A stretch of 64,000 nucleotides of DNA from Chlorokybus atmophyticus (lineage: Eukaryota; Plantae; Mesostigma and Chlorokybus algae), in contig RHPI01002533.1 in assembly GCA_009103225.1 (NCBI GenBank), forward strand, positions 1,171,842 to 1,235,841, given 5' to 3'. Position 1 is the stretch's first letter. Each line of letters opens with the position of its first letter. This document shows positions 1 through 31,260 of this stretch, piece by piece. Below the pieces are notes generated by a model. The model did no database searches. It saw only the letters and a list, made by a program, of their open reading frames with translations, and had not been told where the DNA came from. A program made the position numbers and the translations under genes.

Positions 1-1304
1 AACATAGAAAGGTAGGTTGCTGGCAGTGGTTTGGCAAGCGTACACAGGCATTAAACACGCCAGTTGGTCGCCGCGCTGCACAGTTGTGCATGCGGCGCCG
101 TACAGCGCGCGTGAGCCTGTCATGTCAGCCTGCGACTTGCAGGACTGTGCTTCTATTTTAAAAATCTCTGACTGCAGCGACTTACCGGAGAGCTTGTGGC
201 TCTACGGCATCTGCATCGTTAACCATCGATGATTGCAGCCGCCTTTGCCAGACGGCCCAGATGGACGCCAGCGCCACTAATTAAAGATCTGAGACTCGCT
301 GGATCCCCCTGCGTCATGAAAGCTTGCCAGTTTGGGCCAACTGTGAGCCAATTAAAGACTCAAGTGCTGGGTCGGACATCAAAAGCTCTGCGCGTGCGGC
401 TGATGAACGCCCGCGCGGCCTGACACCTTCTGGAACATAGGGGGATTTACCACGCGTTTTGCATGAACTGACGCAGGGGGCGGGTGGGAAGCCAGCTCTG
501 CTAGGGTTTCGACAATCTTGCGCATTGATTGTGGCGACTGACCCTTAAGTTGACTGTGAAGGGCACACTCCCTACTGTACCGTGGCATATTTCTGCTGCT
601 CCGTGCACTTGTTGCTGTCGCTGTCTCTGTCTTTGGGGTCGTCTTCGCCGTCGTTGTTCCCATTGTCGTTGGGTGTTCTCTTTGCCTACGGCAAGGAGCG
701 CTGTTGTGCGCTGCTGGGTGCAGCTGTCAAGCTGGCGTTGCTTTGGACCACGTTATCAACGGTGAGTTGTCAGCTGGTTGCCAAGCAACTGGCCTATCGT
801 TGATGGTTGCAGACTCCTTATGCGTTGGGTTGCGTCCGTTTACGCATTCATGCTGCTGAGTTTGCCCTACTTGATGTGAACATTGCTTGGGGTGCTTGTA
901 GTGTTTGTCTTGAGGCATGACAGTTAGGGTTGAGGTCAAAGGATGGTACTGGTGTGTTTTGGGTAGGCGTACAGTGGTGTTAACGAGTCGCTTATTATTT
1001 TGGGGCGATGCGTTTACAAACCTGTAGAATTAGTTGCAGCGGTCAGTTTTTTGCATTGTGCAAGCGCAGCGGTCTACTCGGTTACACTGCTTGCACGCTT
1101 GCTCTTGTTTGTCGCATATATGTACAAGCACATGAGAGTGGCATCATGTCACCATCCATCATAGGTAGTTGCATAGTCTTGCATACGCAAATGACGTTGC
1201 CACCGCTGCAGAGTAAGAACTGCGCGCTTGCTCTTCTTTGTCATATTGTATGCAAGCACATCATAGTAGCATTCTGTCACAAATGGTAGTTGCACAGGCA
1301 GCTG

Positions 1305-1334
1305 ATGACGTTGTGGCCGCCGCAGAGTAATTGA
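1305..1334 (+). promoter_or_regulatory. Candidate 'tiny' upstream ORF (MTLWPPQSN*) ending 2 nt before the small-uORF ATG
   Basis: ATG ACG TTG TGG CCG CCG CAG AGT AAT TGA cc ATG. It is in the mRNA only if the acceptor at 1297 (ttgcacag) is used rather than 1325 (ccgcag). Its position resembles the plant AdoMetDC tiny uORF. Confidence 0.3.
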
Positions 1335-1336
1335 CC

Positions 1337-1576
1337 ATGGAGACCAAGGGTGGCAAGTCAAAGACCACGTACTCTGAGTTTCGCCTGCAATATATTGTGG
1401 AAGACGTGCGCGCAGACGGAATCCCTAAGTTTCACACTGCTGCATACGCAGACGTAAGTGATGTGGTATTACGCAAGCTTCTTGGTGTGTCTGTTTGCAC
1501 GTTTTCTCAAGCTGAAGATCAATCACGGGTACTGACATGGTGTTGTATTGTGCAGTGTGTGCGAAAGCCTTCCTGA
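1337..1576 (+). CDS. Conserved 'small' uORF peptide of the plant AdoMetDC 5' leader, join(1337..1453,1556..1576), 45 aa
   Basis: Spliced product METKGGKSKTTYSEFRLQYIVEDVRADGIPKFHTAAYADCVRKPS*. It matches the land-plant consensus MExKGGK...LGYxIEDVRPxGGIKKFRSAAYSNCxRKPS. The intron is GTAAGT(1454)...TGCAG(1555). Confidence 0.93.
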   Translation: METKGGKSKTTYSEFRLQYIVEDVRADGIPKFHTAAYADVSDVVLRKLLGVSVCTFSQAEDQSRVLTWCCIVQCVRKPS

Positions 1577-1732
1577 TAGCGGTTAAGTAGTTTAGCTTTT
1601 TCCCCTGCTGAGGCTATTTAGGAGCAGCCCGCGCCAAGACGGCAGCGGGCCAAGTCCGGGTCACCCCACCCACCCATCCACCCTTTGTCGGGTGCTATCG
1701 CTTCGTGTGTGTCTGTCTAGTTTCCAGCTGCC

Positions 1733-4501
1733 ATGGGAATGCCTGACATTCACGGAGACGAGCCGGTCGCTGTGCCTCCCACTTCGGTGGTGGAGTGCCT
1801 CCCGGCTCCAGGTTTTGAGGGTTTCGAGAAGCGCCTCGAACTGGATTTCTACCCGCCCAAGTCACGATCTGACAAGGGCCTACGACAGTTGACTCGACCC
1901 CAGCTGGACAAGATGTTACAGATTGCCGAGTGCACCATTATTTCCCAGCTGAGCAACGACTTTTTTGACTCCTATGTGTTGTCGGAGTCGAGTCTCTTTG
2001 TCTACCCGACAAAGCTGGTGCTGAAGACATGTGGCACTACGGCACTGTTGAAGGTACACTTTGTTTTTGCCTTGCTTGTTTTTGGCCTGTTGTGCTTAAT
2101 GGCTCTGTAGCTTACTCTGCAAGTCTCATGGGTTTTTTGTTGTATAGTTTGGCCAGTTGCACTTGTTGACATTGCAGCTCAGTCTTCTGCGAGTCTCATG
2201 GTTGTTCTGTTGTAGGCTGTGCCAAGCATCCTGGAGCTAGCAGGCCAGTTGAAGATGCCAATTCGCCGCGTGAAGTTCTCTCGTGGAACTTTCATGTTTC
2301 CTCAAGTCCAGCCATACCCTCATGGTAGCTTTGAACAGGAGACGGAGTTCCTGGAACGCTACTTTGGCAAGTTGGCTGGCGGCAGTAGAGCATTCGTGCT
2401 AGGTGATGCGCTAGGTGGGGGGCCGCACTGGCATGTCTACACTGCTGATGCCGAGGAAGTGGCAACTGAGTGCCATCGCACAATTGAAGTCTGCATGACG
2501 GAGCTGGACGAAGCCAAGGCTGCACAGTTCTTCCGCGGTCCAGACTACGTCAGTGCTGCAGAGACTACGAGGACCTCCGCAATCAATGAGCTTATTCCAA
2601 GTATGGAGATTGATGCCTTCATGTTTGAGCCATGCGGCTACTCCATGAACGGAGTTGACGGTGCAGCGCACAGCACCATCCATGTGACACCTGAGTCTGG
2701 CTTCAGCTATGCCAGTTTTGAGGCCAGTGGCTGTGGCAGCGATCTGGACATCCATGCACTGCTGGCAAGGGTGCTGAGCGTTTTCAAGCCAGGGCGTGTG
2801 TCTGTGGCAGTCACCATTGATGGTGCCTTGGCTGCAAAGCAGGGCATGTGGCCCATGGCTGTTTCTCCTGCGGGATACAAGGCCTTGAACGGGACACAGC
2901 AGTCGCTGCTTAATGGCGGAAGTGTTGCCTTCTATAACTTCACTCTTAATGACGGACGCCCCCTGCGCGCAGCTCGGCGCGAACTGACGGCTACTGGCAC
3001 TGCCTCCAAGGGAGGCAGCGGATCTGCTAACTGTGCCACTGCAGTCACCTCCGTGGCAAAGAAGGCCCAGCTGGAGGAGCAAGCTTTGCTGAAGCAAGTC
3101 AGCAAGCATGTTGATGCAGGCGACCTTGAAGCTGTGTATGATGCGTTTGGTGCTGTGCGCTTGGGCGGGAAGTCCATGTCTGCCGAGTACGATCGCTTCG
3201 CCAAGAGTTGCATTGTGGAGCAAGACTTGCAGGAGACATTCTATGTCATGGATTTGGGTGCAGTAGAGCGGCGCTGGGCGGAGTGGACACGTCTGCTGCC
3301 ACGGGTGCAGGCCTATTATGCTGTCAAGTGCAACCCTGACAATGCTTTGCTGGCTGTGCTTGCTGCCCAAGGCGCCGGGTTCGACGTTGCCAGCAAGGCC
3401 GAGCTGTGCAAAGTCATGCAGCTTGGAGTGACTTCCGATCGCATCGTGTTCTCCAACCCCTGCAAACTTCCGGCGCACATTGCGCATGCTGCTGCAGCTG
3501 GTGTCCACCTGATGTCTTTCGATGCTGAGTCGGAGTTGCACAAGGTCAAGGTGTCAGATCCGAACGCAAGGATGTTGCTGCGCATCCGAGCGGATGACAA
3601 GCATGCCAGGTGTCCACTGGGCGTAAAGTACGGTGCGGAGCTGGCGGAAGTTGAGCACCTGCTTCGGACTGCACAGCACCTCGGTGTGAGAGTGGAGGGT
3701 GTAGACTTCCATGTCGGCAGCGGGGCAAGCGATCCAGGTGCATTCTCTGCAGCGATTGAAGCTGCTCGCCATGTGTTTGAGCTTGCGGAGCAGCTCGGGC
3801 TCCCCCAGATGACTGTCCTCGACATTGGTGGTGGATTTTCTGGTGGTGGCATAGCTGATGGTCTTTCCTTCGCGGACGTCGCCCATGCTATCAATGTTGC
3901 CTTGGATCTGCACTTCCCGACCAGCTCCGGGGTGAGGGTGATAGCAGAGCCAGGCAGGTTCTTTGCAGAGTCGGCCGCAGCATTGGCGAGCAACATCTTT
4001 GGAACGCGCCTCAGGCGCAGCAACTCTGGCGAGCGCGTCCAGGAGTACTGGATCAGTGACGGTCTGTACGGTTCCATGAACTGCCTTCTGTATGATCATG
4101 CCACTCTCTTCGTCCGACCTCTTCAGCCTCATGGTGACACTGCCACTGGCTCCAAGCTGTACCGCTCCACTGTTTTTGGGCCAACTTGTGATGGTCTGGA
4201 CACGGTTCTGAAGGACACCTGGCTGCCTCAGCTTGCTTGCGAAGATTGGCTTATGTTTTCTGACATGGGAGCCTATACCATGGCTGCTGGCAGCAATTTC
4301 AACGGCTTCGACAGCACTGCTGCTCCGGTGTTCTATGTTCGCTCCAGCACTGCAACCGCAGGGGACAGTGACAGTGACATGGAAGACGGCGAAGTGGACT
4401 ATAACAGCGAGGGACCTGCAGTGTCTGACCGCGGCCAGTTTTCCAGTGATTCGGGCGCAGACAGCGATGGTAGCGAAGGCAGTGACGTAACCATGGTGTA
4501 G
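1733..4501 (+). CDS. SAMDC/ODC: Bifunctional S-adenosylmethionine decarboxylase - ornithine decarboxylase fusion, join(1733..2053,2216..4501), about 868 aa
   Basis: N-terminal half: [10 protein letters not shown], the pyruvoyl self-cleavage site [27 protein letters not shown] and [14 protein letters not shown]-terminal half: FYVMDLG, the PLP lysine in [54 protein letters not shown] and MGAYT. The junction between the domains lies inside one uninterrupted exon. Confidence 0.96.
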
Positions 4502-6179
4502 TTGTACAACTGTTGTGATAGTTTTGTTTTGGCCAGTTGCGACTATTTTTTGTTGTGATTCTTACTTGGCTCGAGTTGAAGCCGTCAGCGTTTTTGTACG
4601 TTGTGTCGTGGGTCTTGACTGTCAGTGTCAGTGTTGTCGCTACTCAAGCCACATTGTTGTCTGTGCATGATGGCATTTGCTGCTGCTCGCACACGGAAAG
4701 GTTGGCAGTTCTACATCACTGGTACCATGTGTAGTACAATGCACCGCAACTAACATGTAATGCAGCCTTTCCATGCGTGGCCTGCAGCAGGCGCAGGCAA
4801 CAGCACTGCAGCAATGGCGCCACCAGTGCAATGCAGTGTTGCGCTATGTTGAAGGCAGCCGCTGTTGAGGCCAGCCACCATTCTGGCAGCTGCGGCATAA
4901 ACTGTGCAGCGTCGAGTCCTTTCAATGCACGTATATAATGCCTTTGCCTACGTAGAACATCAAAGCTTGCACGCTTGTGGAATGCGTGTGCCTGTGGGCA
5001 GGGCTGCTGCGGGTGAGCGCGTCTACAGTGTAACACCAATCATGATACAGCTCTTTGATAATGTCTAGCAGCGCTTACAAATGCACATACTATCACCAGG
5101 TCAAATATGCTACCACACATGGCAACAGAGCATGCACCATGACAAGCAAGCATGCATGCTCCATTGACAAACTACGAGCACTGCTAAGCGTTGTACAGCG
5201 ATGACAACCTGTGAGAGACATCCATGTTATGTTACATGCAAACTGCAACCGACTGCACTGGCAACAAGTTGATAAGCTGCTTCATCTGAACAAGGCGGTG
5301 CTAGACTCATGGAAGTGTTTGCTACATGCTGACGATGACCATAGCTAGACGTACATCTTGTCATTGCCCTACTCAAGGCTATCACTCTATATCACTCCAC
5401 CCAATCTGAACCCTCTCGCACGCGGTAAGGCAGCAGCTTGCTGGCTAGCTGCCGCTTGAGAGTCTGCAACTCATATTTTTGTGAAGCATACACGCAAGTG
5501 TTGTATAAAGCATATTAAGGTAACACAGATGATGGGAGTGTGACATACAACAGCAAGATGGGTGCCTGGTGCAGGCAGCTGTGGGTGAGATGCAAGCGTG
5601 TGTGGGCGTGGTGACAGCGCAGGATCCTCCAAGTTTATTGAAGTATTTTGAAGTATTTTTGAAGTTCAAGCAGTGCTGGATGAAGCTGCCAACAAGAAAA
5701 TGATCATAAGCGCTTGCATCCTCGCTCAAACTGACAAAGATGTTTAGGCTAAGACTACGTGGTGTGCTAGATAAGAATGACATTACCTGCCGGCGCTGTA
5801 TTTGCAAGAGAATGACATCTGACTGGCGCTTTGCCTCAAGCAGCAATTGCAGCTCTTCTTTACTTCTTATCACGACTGCGATTCCACAACACGGGGTTAT
5901 TAACTCCTAAATGCTCATCATTGGCAGTGCACACTTGGTGTCCATGCACATCAGCTTTCTTCACACAAACATCAAGCTAACAACCATTACAATCACACCA
6001 GAACCACATACGTCGAGCGTCGAACACACTCCTTGTGTCCGTCAGTGCTGAGCGCTTGAGTGGCGAGAATGCCAAGCTGCAAAAGGCGAGTGCAACAATG
6101 TGGCCTTCTAAGTCGTTATGGAATCCATGAATGTTGAATTGTACTGCTAAATGATTCAGCTATGTTTTTGTTGTGCATG

Positions 6180-12857: not shown

Positions 12858-14469
12858 ATGTGTCACAATGCGCGGGTGAGCACAAAATGCCAGCACGCTG
12901 ACCTGTGGATTAAGCATACTACAATGCAGCCACATGAACAAGTCTACTGCAGTTTGCTCTCCACCTGCTATCCACAAGGCAGCGAAAGACTTTCGTCAGT
13001 GACCACATGGATAGGTTGGAGCCAATACTGCTCACGGCTTGCATTAGGCCTTGCATTGTTACGAGCATGCAAGCAAAATTTTTGCCAGCTTGTTGTATAA
13101 GCGGGAAGTAGATGACACTCCTTGTGCATAGTGTTTGCGCAACAGCAGACACTTGACAATTGCTTCCCGCACAACCATGCCCCCCCAAATGCGCACAAAC
13201 AGCGGTGTAATCAGCGATGTCATGTAAACTAGCATTGAGTATAGTTGTGACGCTTGTCAATGTGTTGTACATGTGTATGACAATACCTGCGGCTGGGCAA
13301 TGTGCAGCCGCAACAATGCATGAGTACTGCAATGGTGGTAGTACAGCGTGTGTTTACTCCACGCGATCTCCGCTCCTAGCTTTCAACTGCGAGCATACTG
13401 TGCGGTATAGTGTGCCAGTTTCTGCAGTGTGTGGTGTTGCTGGTACATAGGCCCCCGTAATAAAAGGTCAAAGAGCCTCAACAACTTATGATTCTATCAG
13501 TATTGGAGTTGCGCTGTGCAGCTTGATGGACTCTCGTTGGTTCATATCGCAAAGCTTACCTCACGCCTCGGGTGGTATTGCAATTGAATAGAGCAGCCTT
13601 CCTTTAAGAATGGTAGTGAAATCGTGTACAGATTCCTCTCAGTTGGACTGGCCTCCAGCCGGTCACCATTTCGTTGCTGGACGCTTCCCGCTCTAGCCAG
13701 TCAGCAATGCCCCTGCCAATCGTGTACAAGTAATAAGTCACAAAACATGGTTAATGGGTTTGATCGCAAGACACACCCAACGTGTCTCACACCATGACAG
13801 AACAACCGTACGATAAATTGCTGATAAACTGCTTGCACAATTGGTTGAAGAAGCTTCTTGACAAACCGCTTACTTATTGAGATGCGTTGACAAACCTACA
13901 CATGCACATGTGTGCACGCCACCCAACACCAACGCTAAGAGGCTGCAACAACAAGACTAAGACCATCTATTGCCATCATGTCCGCGGGTTTTATACCCGC
14001 CAGGAATACACCTGTCTACTCTAGAAGCCACCACGTTCGCTACACTTATTTCAATTCTGCGTTCTAAGAAGCATCTTGTAGCTACTTCCAAGGGCTATCT
14101 ACCAAGCTCTAGAACACCAAAATCGGTGCAGTAACCACCGAGTTATGACGATTCTCGTGCAGGCCTTGAAGTCGCTAGACTCCGGACTCGAGTCCTCGCC
14201 TAGAGCCTTCTCGCGGCCATTCCTATTCAGAGGGCAAGCTGACCGTCCGCCTGGATGTAGGAATATCTTCAACATTACTAGGGTGTGCAAGTTTTGTCAG
14301 AGCAATAGCCGTACAGCTGATGAAGAAACATACAAACATGCACACACGGTCACGCACATTCCTCCCCCCCCCCCCCCCCGCCCACCAAGGATTCAACAAA
14401 CAGNCCCCTTCTGCGCACGCTCACGTTCATGCGCATAGATTGCATTGATTGCGCACTGATCCGTAATGC

Positions 14470-17199: not shown

Positions 17200-20100
17200 G
17201 GTCTTGCTTGCGTGCATTGTGTCACATGGACTGGTTAAATGCATCACGTTCGCCGCGGAATCCTACCAGCCTGTCGCAGCAATGGCAACTTGTTCTGGCA
17301 AGTTGAAGCTTCCGTGTTGTAGGGTGAGCGAGGGGATAGGTGCTATGTGGTGCGTGCGGGATAGCTGGCTGTGCATTGCAAGGCTGACAGAGCAAGATGC
17401 TGTGGCCTATGAAAAACCAGCGGCTGGCGTCACAGCCATTGTCGATGCTGAACAGCTTTATGGGCCGCCATGACCGCTCATGTGCAGTCCAGTTGAAGTT
17501 ATCCATTGTCCTCGCAGGAGTACAATTGCACATTTTGCAAGCGCATTATCTGCATGCCGATGCTTGCTGCGTGCCTTCAAAGCCTTACTACTGCACCAGG
17601 TACGTGCTCGATCTCTTGTTCCTTATATGCTGTACAGCGTTGTTATATACTTGTGAGTGTCAATGCATTGCATATGTGGTCACTTTATGTCTTCCTCAAC
17701 CGTTAACCGGCAGGCAAGAGAATGCACAAGCATATGGATGTTGCAAGTTAGGTTTTACAATGGCATCTATTCTTTCAACAACAATCACCAGCTACAATTA
17801 TGTTAGTTTGTTGCGTTTTGCGGTTGGATGCATTGCCTCATGGACATACAACTTGTAGGTCTTCCATTGCAAGCTTGCGATTGACCACCCTTCCAAAGGG
17901 CACCTTTCTGTACACTCAGGTATTGCATCCAATGAAAGCAATTTGTCTTTATTACACACGCAGTAACTGCCGCGCGAGTTGTGCTAAACAAATGCATGCT
18001 CTTGCCCCCCNNNNNNNNNNNNNNNNNNNNNNNNNNNNNNNNNNNNNNNNNNNNNNNNNNNNNNNNNNNNNNNNNNNNNNNNNNNNNNNNNNNNNNNNNN
18101 NNNNNNNNNNNNNNNNNNNNNNNNNNNNNNNNNNNNNNNNNNNNNNNNNNNNNNNNNNNNNNNNNNNNNNNNNNNNNNNNNNNNNNNNNNNNNNNNNNNN
18201 NNNNNNNNNNNNNNNNNNNNNNNNNNNNNNNNNNNNNNNNNNNNNNNNNNNNNNNNNNNNNNNNNNNNNNNNNNNNNNNNNNNNNNNNNNNNNNNNNNNN
18301 NNNNNNNNNNNNNNNNNNNNNNNNNNNNNNNNNNNNNNNNNNNNNNNNNNNNNNNNNNNNNNNNNNNNNNNNNNNNNNNNNNNNNNNNNNNNNNNNNNNN
18401 NNNNNNNNNNNNNNNNNNNNNNNNNNNNNNNNNNNNNNNNNNNNNNNNNNNNNNNNNNNNNNNNNNNNNNNNNNNNNNNNNNNNNNNNNNNNNNNNNNNN
18501 NNNNNNNNNNNNNNNNNNNNNNNNNNNNNNNNNNNNNNNNNNNNNNNNNNNNNNNNNNNNCCCGCCCACCACCACCACCACCACCAAACAAACATGCGCT
18601 ATGCCTCCACAATGCGCACAAAAGCACACGTCGATACCTGCACGCCCGCACGCACTCACATGCACGTATTGTATGCCTAATGCATGGACAAAAGCTCACT
18701 CTCTGTACATCATTGTGTCGGGTATGGTCCGCTTGCACACTTATGAAGACGCAGGTGACGCCGCAAAGAGCATACAGCTAGGAACGCCACAAACTTTACA
18801 ACCACAAAAGTAAGTTGAATGCTGCTTATTTCCCATCCCTTACTCTGTTACTCTCGCCGAGCAAGCCAAGATGCCACTGGTTGTATGCCCCCATGGCACA
18901 TCGCATTCCCAAGTGCACGGCCACGATGTCACGTGAGGTGATACAAATCTCAGCAACTTCTGGCACAGTGCATCGCAGGTGACGCTATCGGTATAGGGTT
19001 GATGGTGAGTTAACACATTTGGTGTTGACTAGCTGTGTCAATAAATGGTTCCTAGTTTAGATGCATCCCATGCAGGGCCATGCGCCAAGGCATAGCTGGC
19101 GCACTGTGGTTGCTGAGGAGGCAACAAAAGTGCTCGTCTTGCATTTTCATAAATTTTTAGTCCGTTTTTGTACATGGCAGCATCGCTTCAGACGCAAATC
19201 AATGACGATGCAATGCCTCCAACCGTGATATACTCCTTGCCAGGTGGCGGAATTGAAGACGCTGGTGTTCCGTGCCGCAATGCGCCAGCTGTGTCTTAGC
19301 ACACTGGTATTCTGTCGCACACAGAGTTGCATCGCGAGCCTGAGGTATGAGTTACAACTGGCATCCAACTTACCCCTGTGCAGTGCTTTATTAAGGACAT
19401 GGAGGCGTTGACTATGTTTGTGACTGTTAAAAAGCTACAATTGAGTCTCTCTCAGCATTGTCGTTGCATCAAACTTGCGCAACCAACGGCTTGTTATTGC
19501 GCATCTGTGTTTCAACCACTGAAAAGCTCATCAGCATTTCACGATTGCACGTCTGCAGAAGTCTCATCTACTGACAGGTGGATGCTTGCGACATCATCGT
19601 GCGGCAGGCTCATCGTTTGAACGCATTCCATCCGCTGGCAGCATTTTACCATCAGTTAAAAAAGGTTTGCTGCTGATGGTCGCAGAATGAGCAAGGAAGT
19701 TCCTGTTTGTTGAATCCTTGGTGGGGCAGTCCGTGTGCGTCAGCAAGATTAAGCGAAATCAACCACCTTAGCTAGATTGAGTCCTTCCAACAAAGTATTT
19801 GAAGAAAAGCTGTTTGGCAGATGCCTTGCCGTGCTTCATGCAGGGAGCTGCTTTGGTGAAGCCTCCCTTCTGCAGATTCGTTGCTTTCTTGTGTATATAT
19901 AAAAAGTCAAGCTTTGAAAGCAAAGACCGGCTAGATTTCAAATACATCCTCACAGCGCTGTCCATTAATGTAGGGCGCTCCCAAAATGCCACCGTCGTAG
20001 AACAGCAGCGCAGACAACCACTCGAGATGAATGCAAAAGATTACATGCAGGCGCATGTCGACTCAAGTAAGGTATTTGATGGTGTTTAACAACATATTAA

Positions 20101-29369: not shown

Positions 29370-30323
29370 CCACCGGGCGGGCCTGGTCAATCAGGACGCA
29401 AACGGCCTCAGTCGCAACCCCCACCTTTCCACCAACGACGCCATCGGTGCCCGACATGAGCTGGGTCCAGTGGCACCACCACCACAGGTGGTCACCATGT
29501 TTGCCAGCTGCATTGCGCTCGAGACGGGACACCATTATAGGAGCGGCTCCGACAATGCCGGAAACAGAAGAGATGCCAACGCTCACCCACGTCGATACCG
29601 ACCCATCTGAACAGACCACGCCAGCAGATGCTCAACTCCCGGCTGCAGACTTATGTCCAGACATCTGGTTGGACAAGAACTCCATGGTCTACCTACAACA
29701 TCGACAACAGGTGGCAAAACCAAGCGCGCGCGGGCGTGACCGCGTCAGGCAGCCTGGCCAAATTTAACACGGTGACTGACGAAGGACTGAGGGACTGACT
29801 GGTGCGTGAGCCTGCCTGCCGCTGCCTAAAATGTTACTTTTGAACTGTTGGGTTTGCCGTTGGCTTGAGTGGACTGAAGCAGACGGCCGCGGGCCGAAAT
29901 TGGTTGTCAATGGCACTAACCGGCCGAGAGTTGTCAACCCATTACCTTTTGGTCGATGTGCACAAACGGCCGTTAGCCATTGGTTACGGACAGCTGACAG
30001 CAATAGCGGCAGTTTCTTTGCCGTTACACTGCTGTTAATATGTGACCCTTGCCGTTTGACAAAAGTTGGCAATTTTTGCCGTAAGCCAACACTAACATGC
30101 CATGCAGCTTGTACAAACCTTTGACTGATTGTTTGGTCTTGCAAGTATAAGCTCACAATAGATACAATGTACCGGTAGTGCTGAGAGTATGTCCACTGGC
30201 AACTGAGCAGCCGACTTGCGCATAAAACTACCTACAACATTGAGTCTAGCTGTCGCACTCATGCGCAGCTTGTCAATTAGTGGTGCCTGCCTCAGAACTC
30301 CTCACCNNNNNNNNNNNNNNNNN

Positions 30324-31260
30324 NCCCCCCCCCCCCCCCCCCCCCTCCTGTTCCTCCTCCAACAAGTCGTTTGCTTCAACATCGGAGTCATCTTCTGCCT
30401 CGCTCGCTGACAATACAACGGCTACTTTGTCCTTCAGCTTGAATGTCAGCACCTCGCCGCGCACGCGCATGCGCTTGATGGTCGCTTTGAGAATGACCAC
30501 CTGCATTGGGTAATGCTGTAAGAGTGGCGTGCTGCAAGAGGACTAGCCCATCAGCATACACATGCTTACCTCGTCTTCCGCTTTGTTGCAGTCCGCCAGG
30601 CAGACAGTCTGCCGTGCTGCTCTTGGTTCACTCTGACCAACATGGCAATCTGCAAGCATATTGCTTAATTGCCGCTAGAAACATTAAACTAGGTCATGGA
30701 TTACCCGTTCGTTGTACTCGGCAGCTTCTCTTTTGCGACTTGTGAGCTCCCGCAAGTAGAACTAGGCTGTGCATTTGCGAGATTGGTCATGCTGTCCATG
30801 TACATGACACTGGAGGCTGTGCATGAGGGTGTGCATGTGTTATGACAGTGTATGTCATTTGCAAGATACTTGAGGCTGTGCATGTGCAAGACAAAAGAAC
30901 CCAAGCATGGCATTGACAGTGCATCATAACCCACCTTGGTTATGCCAATCTTGTTTGGTCCCTTCAATAATGTCGCCATGGTCGCAGCTGCTGGTGGGTC
31001 GGACGTTCTTAGAGGCAGTTTTGTGGTGTGCCTTTGCCCACTCGGAGGGGGAGCCTGGTAAGATATCGCCCGAGTCACTGTTGTCATTGGCTGTGCCCTT
31101 GGTAGGCATGGTGGGGTTTATCACCTTGTACACCCCACCGGCACCTTGCCCGCCCTGTGCAAGGATACGCTTCATCCCGGTCCTCAACCACAGTGCCGAC
31201 TACGCCCCTGGCAGCACCGCCAGCGATCCATCAAATGCCACATACCCTCGGCATCACTGC
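30324..31260 (-). pseudogene. Unknown multi-exon gene at the left end of the insertion, divergent from the transposase
   Basis: Reading frame VAFDGSLAVLPGA*SALWLRTGMKRILAQGG... and a later exon QVVILKATIKRMRVRGEVLTFKLKDKVAVVL with an acidic tail. No family recognised. Confidence 0.35.

Follow-up and report, generated by a model that had tools for sequence, protein, structure and literature searches.

In a 64,000-nucleotide (nt) stretch of DNA (the window, whose positions are used throughout) from Chlorokybus atmophyticus, a streptophyte alga of early-branching position, the region 1337-4501 of the plus strand was found to carry a gene in which one open reading frame (ORF) unites a eukaryotic S-adenosylmethionine (AdoMet) decarboxylase (AdoMetDC) with an ornithine decarboxylase (ODC), behind a small upstream ORF (uORF) of the plant type. 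It is likely that this gene encodes a uORF-led bifunctional decarboxylase inherited from an early ancestor of the green lineage, with both activities and the polyamine control predicted from the sequence. The gene is an ordinary representative of a widespread family that has been poorly described; what is new here is the corrected gene model, the conserved intron in the uORF, and the tree evidence on the separate plant genes.

Gene model and transcripts

The six-frame ORF list contained ORFs of 760 codons (2219-4501, plus strand), 125 codons (1733-2110) and 81 codons (1331-1576). Pfam placed SAM_decarbox (profile positions 88-342 of 343), Orn_Arg_deC_N and Orn_DAP_Arg_deC in the first, SAM_decarbox positions 3-85 of 343 in the second and AdoMetDC_leader in the third, and NCBIfam was concordant with Pfam on the AdoMetDC part. 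Judged by the E-values of the domain matches, chance matches are no concern. A gene model built from canonical splice sites read in the DNA (Table 1) gave a main ORF of 868 amino acids (aa; 93.1 kDa) in two exons, 1733-2053 and 2216-4501, whose product consists of a complete eukaryotic AdoMetDC, a variable linker of ca. 90 aa, a complete ODC and an acidic tail, in this order. A preliminary description of this region had proposed such an ORF, and its features were borne out by the Pfam matches, the ORFs and the splice model at the coordinates it gave. The linker also lies inside one exon, as had been claimed, since nt 2951-3220 fall within 2216-4501.

Transcript evidence was obtained by placing contigs of four public runs (X1 to X4) on positions 700-5000. 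X1 and X2 came from two studies and were both 100% alike to the window, X3 was a related run, and X4 came from a related strain or species (95-99% alike). That the runs are RNA is a guess in their records; the contigs of X1 and X2 carry spliced joints, and they were therefore taken to be transcript assemblies. The joint 761/1326, corresponding to the 564-nt leader intron, was seen in X1, X2 and X4, and a 259-nt contig of X2 spliced at this joint reached ca. 116 nt past position 700. The joint 1453/1556 within the uORF was present in X1. At 2053/2216 there was a true joint in X3, and X1, X2 and X4 showed loose ends reading CTGTGCCAAGC... at 2054. Within 2216-4565, the contigs of X1 to X4 had no joint and no insertion or deletion, and transcripts ended near 4565-4570 in contigs of X1 and X2. 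One spliced contig runs from exon 1 through the uORF to position 1645, where it overlaps a second contig (1622-2026) that crosses the main AUG; by this path of assembled contigs, rather than by a single read, the uORF and the AdoMetDC ORF belong to one mRNA, with the uORF in its 5' leader. The gene is real and expressed.

Table 1 Features of the uORF-AdoMetDC-ODC gene (window positions) and of the last uORF exon at five other loci (positions within each fetched locus).
Feature	Position	Strand	Evidence or remark
5' leader exon 1	584..761	+	minimum extent; X2 contig
Leader intron, 564 nt, GT..AG	762..1325	+	joint 760/1325 (cut +1) in X1, X2, X4
uORF exon 1, 39 codons, METKGG...KFHTAAYAD	1337..1453	+	PF08132 match
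Intron within uORF, 102 nt, GTAAGT..GCAG	1454..1555	+	joint 1453/1556 in X1
uORF exon 2, CVRKPS-stop	1556..1576	+	conserved C-terminal stalling segment, penultimate Pro
Spacer, uORF stop to main ATG, 156 nt	1577..1732	+	RNA contig 1622-2026
Main ORF exon 1, aa 1-107: AdoMetDC beta chain and alpha-chain start, E85/S86 (nt 1985-1990), C100	1733..2053	+	Pfam 3-85/343; alignment to potato 1MHM, human 1JL0
Intron, 162 nt, phase 0	2054..2215	+	joint 2051/2214 (cut +2) in X3; loose ends in X1, X2, X4
Remainder of AdoMetDC domain, aa 108-352 (F244, S250, H263, E267)	2216..2950	+	Pfam 88-342/343; 1MHM_A E 5.6e-55; human alpha-chain alignments
Linker, aa 353-442	2951..3220	+	alignment of fusions; RNA contigs
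ODC domain, aa 443-818	3221..4348	+	human ODC E 2e-102; PF02784, PF00278
50-aa Asp/Glu/Ser-rich tail and stop codon	4349..4501	+	alignment; tail itself 4349-4498
3' untranslated region, minimum extent	4502..4570	+	X1 and X2 contigs end at 4565 and 4570
Last uORF mini-exon, locus L001	5796-5816		
Last uORF mini-exon, locus L002	5808-5828		
Last uORF mini-exon, locus L003	4856-4876		
Last uORF mini-exon, locus L004	4758-4778		
Last uORF mini-exon, locus L005	4906-4926		

Mis-assembly or read-through might have joined two neighbouring genes whose enzymes are in fact made separately, and it is true that no single contig spans the whole ORF and that the public JGI model of the gene is wrong in other respects. 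Against such an artefact, the exon 2216-4501 is open for 761 codons without a stop. RNA across the linker had been proposed as a check, and the contigs covering it (2747-3166 and 3142-4565, from two studies) pass through without a joint and with zero mismatches. The X4 contig of the relative differs from the window in the linker by substitutions alone, 11 of the 18 at third codon positions, with no insertions or deletions. The same architecture was also found in a 92%-identical paralog and, in other genomes and transcriptomes obtained independently, in more than 90 orthologs. We regard an artefact of this kind as very improbable.

A word search returned a public entry with 100% identity, jgi/Chlat1/221/Chrsp1S03129. 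This JGI model (Chlat1/221, 866 aa) was rejected as a description of the gene: in the model, uORF exon 1 is joined to the main ORF and the YVLSESS segment, which holds the processing site, is lost, and no RNA joint from 1453 to ca. 1720 backing this splice was found in the contigs of X1 to X4. The paralog, Chrsp13S02157, lies at another locus; 36 of its 39 exon-1 uORF residues are identical and three differ. Its public model (948 aa) reads through the leader, and a public model from Closterium also absorbs the uORF. Public models of this gene family often swallow the uORF or drop catalytic segments, and a match to PF08132, the uORF family, within a long protein helps to spot the uORF-absorbing error. 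The runs of N that mark assembly gaps in the window are at 14404, 18011-18560 and 30307-30324, none of them near the gene.

The two decarboxylase domains

The AdoMetDC half matched PF01536 with 120.9 bits (profile 3-85) and 204.7 bits (88-342) against a cut-off of 22.2, and its two exons matched TIGR00535 with 103.3 and 198.8 bits, the cut-off of 233 being that for the whole protein. Residues were checked by alignment to potato 1MHM and human 1JL0 and 3EP3. F28, E29, E32, E85/S86, C100, F244, S250, H263 and E267 correspond to human F7, E8, E11, E67/S68, C82, F223, S229, H243 and E247, and by this alignment the self-processing site LSE/SS and the catalytic Cys, Ser, His and Glu are all in place. 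R34 and K127 occupy the positions of potato R18 and R114, which we take to be the residues filling the putrescine site; this suggests that the AdoMetDC half is a plant-type, putrescine-independent enzyme.

The ODC half matched PF02784 (E 1.5e-71), PF00278 (E 5.9e-17) and human ODC (E 2e-102, aligned over residues 34-412). K478, D497, K578, H606 and GGG645-647 correspond to human ODC K69, D88, K169, H197 and G235-237, while E and R in AEPGR684, D in SDGLYGS721, C765-D766 and Y in GAYT792 correspond to E274/R277, D332, C360-D361 and Y389. The lysine for pyridoxal phosphate, the Gly-rich loop, the catalytic Cys and the substrate-binding Asp residues of an ODC are thereby present, and the residues are consistent with an ODC. 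The earlier statement that the catalytic motifs of both halves look intact was confirmed for YVLSE85/S86S, AVK478CN, PTC765D766G and YDH at 733.

One half could nevertheless act as a non-catalytic regulator, as do the AdoMetDC prozyme of trypanosomatids and the antizyme inhibitor, or the ODC half could prefer lysine or arginine. Near homologs of the ODC half include the arginine decarboxylase A207R of PBCV-1 and lysine/ornithine decarboxylases, and relatives in lycophytes are annotated as lysine/ornithine decarboxylases. As regards a non-catalytic half, however, all checked residues of both domains are the catalytic ones, and neither domain search had a stand-alone Chlorokybus AdoMetDC or ODC in its best 120 hits. 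The latter result suggests that the two fused paralogs are the Chlorokybus source, and probably the sole source, of both activities. A regulatory half or another substrate is thus considered quite improbable, and an enzyme with both activities is the reading followed below.

The linker ranges from 64 to 176 aa among the fusions, with little conserved save a stretch belonging to the N-terminus of ODC, which fits a flexible tether. The C-terminal tail of 50 aa is about half Asp, Glu and Ser. Similar tails (41-94 aa) were seen in Mesostigma, Klebsormidium, Mesotaenium, Closterium and liverworts, and none was present in chlorophytes, Selaginella or ferns in the alignment of fusions; a role in turnover or phosphorylation is a guess.

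The proenzyme would cleave itself between E85 and S86, giving a beta chain of 9.5 kDa and an alpha chain of 83.6 kDa; the alpha chain would bear both the pyruvoyl group and, through the flexible tether of ca. 90 aa, the ODC domain. The expectation that ODC rides on the pyruvoyl alpha subunit would thus follow from the position of the predicted cleavage. ODC domains would pair head to tail with shared active sites (K478 from one chain and C765 from the other), and the particle would therefore be at least a dimer with two AdoMetDC units, as in Plasmodium. Such an enzyme would yield putrescine and decarboxylated AdoMet, both substrates of spermidine synthase.

The uORF and its predicted control of both enzymes

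The spliced uORF begins with the ATG at 1337 in a strong context (gaccATGG) and encodes a peptide of 45 aa that ends in CVRKPS-stop. Its penultimate proline is the feature of SAMDC (plant AdoMetDC) uORFs pointed out by Ivanov et al. 2010 (PMC2811004). Against PF08132, the spliced peptide scored 52.4 bits (E 4.8e-14, profile 1-51 of 51, cut-off 25) and the unspliced translation 33.2 bits, and the rise in score on splicing supports the uORF splice. No ATG was found in 584-761 (at least 178 nt of exon 1) or in the 11 nt before the uORF AUG, which is therefore the first AUG of the spliced mRNA.

Two introns of the leader showed further peculiarities. The 102-nt intron of the uORF is a multiple of three, in frame and stop-free, and an unspliced leader would yield a peptide of 79 aa in which the conserved N-terminal and C-terminal parts are both retained; the corresponding introns of Marchantia and Klebsormidium have stops, and the lack of stops in Chlorokybus may be chance (ca. 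1 in 15). The leader intron holds a diverged tandem duplication of ca. 128 nt (1092-1216 and 1221-1330, matching blocks 82-91% alike), which was detected by a repeat search (families D1-D3); Tandem Repeats Finder reported no repeats in 700-4700. The duplication includes a second 3' splice acceptor, CTGCAG/AGTAA at 1211/1212, and RNA use was seen solely for 1325/1326.

At high polyamine levels, ribosomes would stall at the ...RKPS-stop end of the uORF and scanning to the main AUG would be blocked, so that one sensor would throttle both enzymes. The preliminary description had gone further and proposed that one uORF sets the supply of putrescine and decarboxylated AdoMet at 1:1. One leader uORF does precede one ORF, and the polypeptides would be made 1:1; the fluxes are not necessarily equal.

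The known counterpart is the small uORF of land-plant SAMDC mRNAs, reportedly characterised as the conserved-peptide uORF (CPuORF) of Arabidopsis AdoMetDC1 by Hanfrey et al. in 2005. The Chlorokybus peptide is homologous to it over the full PF08132 profile, shares the ...RKPS-stop end with its penultimate Pro, and is likewise located in the leader of an AdoMetDC mRNA. Unlike the land-plant uORF, it precedes a fusion and would gate ODC too; it is also shorter than the profile (45 aa against 51) and lacks an overlapping tiny uORF. The plant literature takes the SAMDC uORF as a control of AdoMetDC alone.

Several points weigh against a uORF-controlled bifunctional enzyme. The RNA support consists of short assembled contigs overlapping by 25-30 nt, not of single long molecules, and equal numbers of the two domains are no guarantee of equal fluxes. 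The leader has no counterpart of the overlapping 'tiny' uORF that belongs to the dual-uORF circuit of land plants, and the regulation therefore cannot be identical to that of Arabidopsis. An ATG at 1305 was tried as a start of a tiny uORF and rejected, as it sits in the leader intron. Ivanov et al. 2010 (PMC2811004) reported the tiny uORF from Chlamydomonas and Volvox and found none in Chlorella or prasinophytes; it is therefore not family-defining.

The absence of the tiny uORF, to which land plants owe a two-state switch, together with the lack of any algal experiment in the literature read, would also fit a uORF that is an inherited relic or a constitutive damper, unresponsive to polyamines in this alga. 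This is unlikely in our judgement. X4 differs from the window in the uORF at 1360, 1393, 1402 and 1423, all synonymous third-position changes, and this, with the near identity of the paralog's exon-1 peptide, indicates purifying selection on the peptide. Over roughly the entire green lineage, the uORF has kept its final six codons and the intron in front of them. In plants, moreover, the repression depends on the peptide sequence, as described in a study that also described the spread of the uORF in green algae (PMC2811004). A polyamine-responsive uORF hence remains the favoured reading of the Chlorokybus leader.

Fused and separate genes in the green lineage

The combination of uORF and fusion, of which the preliminary description knew no earlier account, is not special to this genome. 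The word search found more than 90 proteins with PF01536, PF02784 and PF00278 at 38-57% identity, including complete transcriptome ORFs. They occur in streptophyte algae (Klebsormidium, Mesotaenium, Closterium, Mesostigma), in chlorophytes (Cymbomonas, Micractinium, Coccomyxa, Trebouxia, Auxenochlorella and others), in liverworts (Marchantia, Riccia, Calypogeia), and in lycophytes and ferns (Selaginella, Adiantum, Ceratopteris). The view that land plants encode the two enzymes separately is thus correct only for some lineages (such as mosses and seed plants), but not for these liverworts, lycophytes and ferns. Five orthologs (Marchantia polymorpha, Klebsormidium nitens, Selaginella moellendorffii, Mesostigma viride and Micractinium conductrix) have the same domain order and are 42-49% identical to the Chlorokybus protein over more than 90% of the length; where examined, the green orthologs have the same uORF with the same intron position. 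Chlorokybus differs from them in having two copies, 92% identical.

The uORF was sought at five fetched loci (Marchantia, Klebsormidium, Micractinium, Selaginella and Cymbomonas). Klebsormidium and Selaginella have an annotated small PF08132 gene directly upstream of the fused gene, Marchantia a peptide MEAKGG...AAYSN ca. 560 nt upstream, and Cymbomonas a recognisable upstream copy. At all five loci, a ...cag acceptor a short way upstream of the main ATG is followed by a mini-exon encoding CVRKPS-stop or the variants FVRKPS, CLKAPS and CVKKPS. At the Micractinium locus this last mini-exon (CVKKPS-stop) alone was found, and the N-terminal part of the uORF was not identified there. The uORF-fusion combination is accordingly present also in Klebsormidium, Closterium, Cymbomonas, Marchantia and Selaginella, and probably in Micractinium. 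The intron before the last six uORF codons is common to six species, Chlorokybus included, from both chlorophytes and streptophytes, and is therefore as old as the uORF-fusion arrangement.

A maximum-likelihood tree of the AdoMetDC domain (48 rows) was largely species-tree-like, with stand-alone SAMDCs nested at several places among the fused genes: those of Chlorophyceae, mosses, some liverworts, Diphasiastrum, Ginkgo, and ferns plus angiosperms. Its well-supported branches force at least six state changes, although part of the 'stand-alone' set probably consists of truncated models; the entries from Closterium are nearly identical to fused genes. In the tree of ODC domains, those of fused genes from Klebsormidium through ferns formed one well-supported, species-tree-like group, whose sister (100/98) comprised the stand-alone ODCs of Klebsormidium, Sphagnum, lycophytes and seed plants. 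The same pairing of fused and stand-alone forms was seen in chlorophytes, and Mesostigma stood with its own duplicate. Both trees agree largely with the species tree; they are unrooted, with the putative outgroups on long branches. The simplest reading of them would be a single ancient fusion with later duplications and recurrent loss of one half; they suggest that the fused form came first and that the stand-alone SAMDC genes of plants arose from it by truncation more than once. Per-domain phylogenies had been proposed to separate shared from independent fusion: the green-lineage fusions covered by these trees read as one old fusion.

The Chlorokybus arrangement would thus have been inherited from an early green-lineage ancestor and not invented locally. 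A fuller scenario, to which we give about an even chance, is that uORF-AdoMetDC-ODC was the ancestral arrangement of the green lineage, that the uORF-controlled SAMDC of mosses, ferns and seed plants is its repeatedly truncated descendant, that the stand-alone ODC of plants is a duplicated C-terminal half of the fused gene, and that in Chlorokybus one peptide sensor still gates both steps that limit the rate of polyamine synthesis. If this is true, Chlorokybus is a natural test bed for why the two enzymes were later uncoupled. The gene and its relatives offer an evolutionary frame for the assembly and later splitting of plant polyamine control.

The fusion architecture of the green lineage is visible in public annotation. 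No open paper describing a green-lineage AdoMetDC-ODC fusion was found, and an earlier description in subscription papers is possible. A bifunctional AdoMetDC/ODC of Plasmodium falciparum was reportedly described by Muller et al. in 2000. The Plasmodium and Chlorokybus proteins have the same AdoMetDC-hinge-ODC order in one ORF, keep both sets of active-site residues, and share the presumed purpose of a balanced supply of putrescine and decarboxylated AdoMet. Plasmodium is not known to have a uORF of the PF08132 type. The plasmodial enzyme has ca. 170 kDa per chain with parasite-specific inserts, as against 93 kDa in Chlorokybus, and its ODC domains dimerise; its activities are thought to be balanced rather than channelled, and it has been termed 'unique' (PMC3253432). 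That label is contradicted by the green-lineage genes: a compact, insert-free fusion under the plant polyamine sensor is the common state in green algae and non-seed land plants, and a 93-kDa protein is an easier subject for the structure and kinetics of domain cross-talk.

A protein-atlas search found a eukaryotic cluster of 77 members with all three domains. The atlas also contains an actinobacterial cluster (90 members, ca. 506 aa) that combines ODC-type decarboxylase domains dependent on pyridoxal phosphate with the bacterial AdoMet_dc domain PF02675, which may be an independent bacterial fusion of analogous enzymes.

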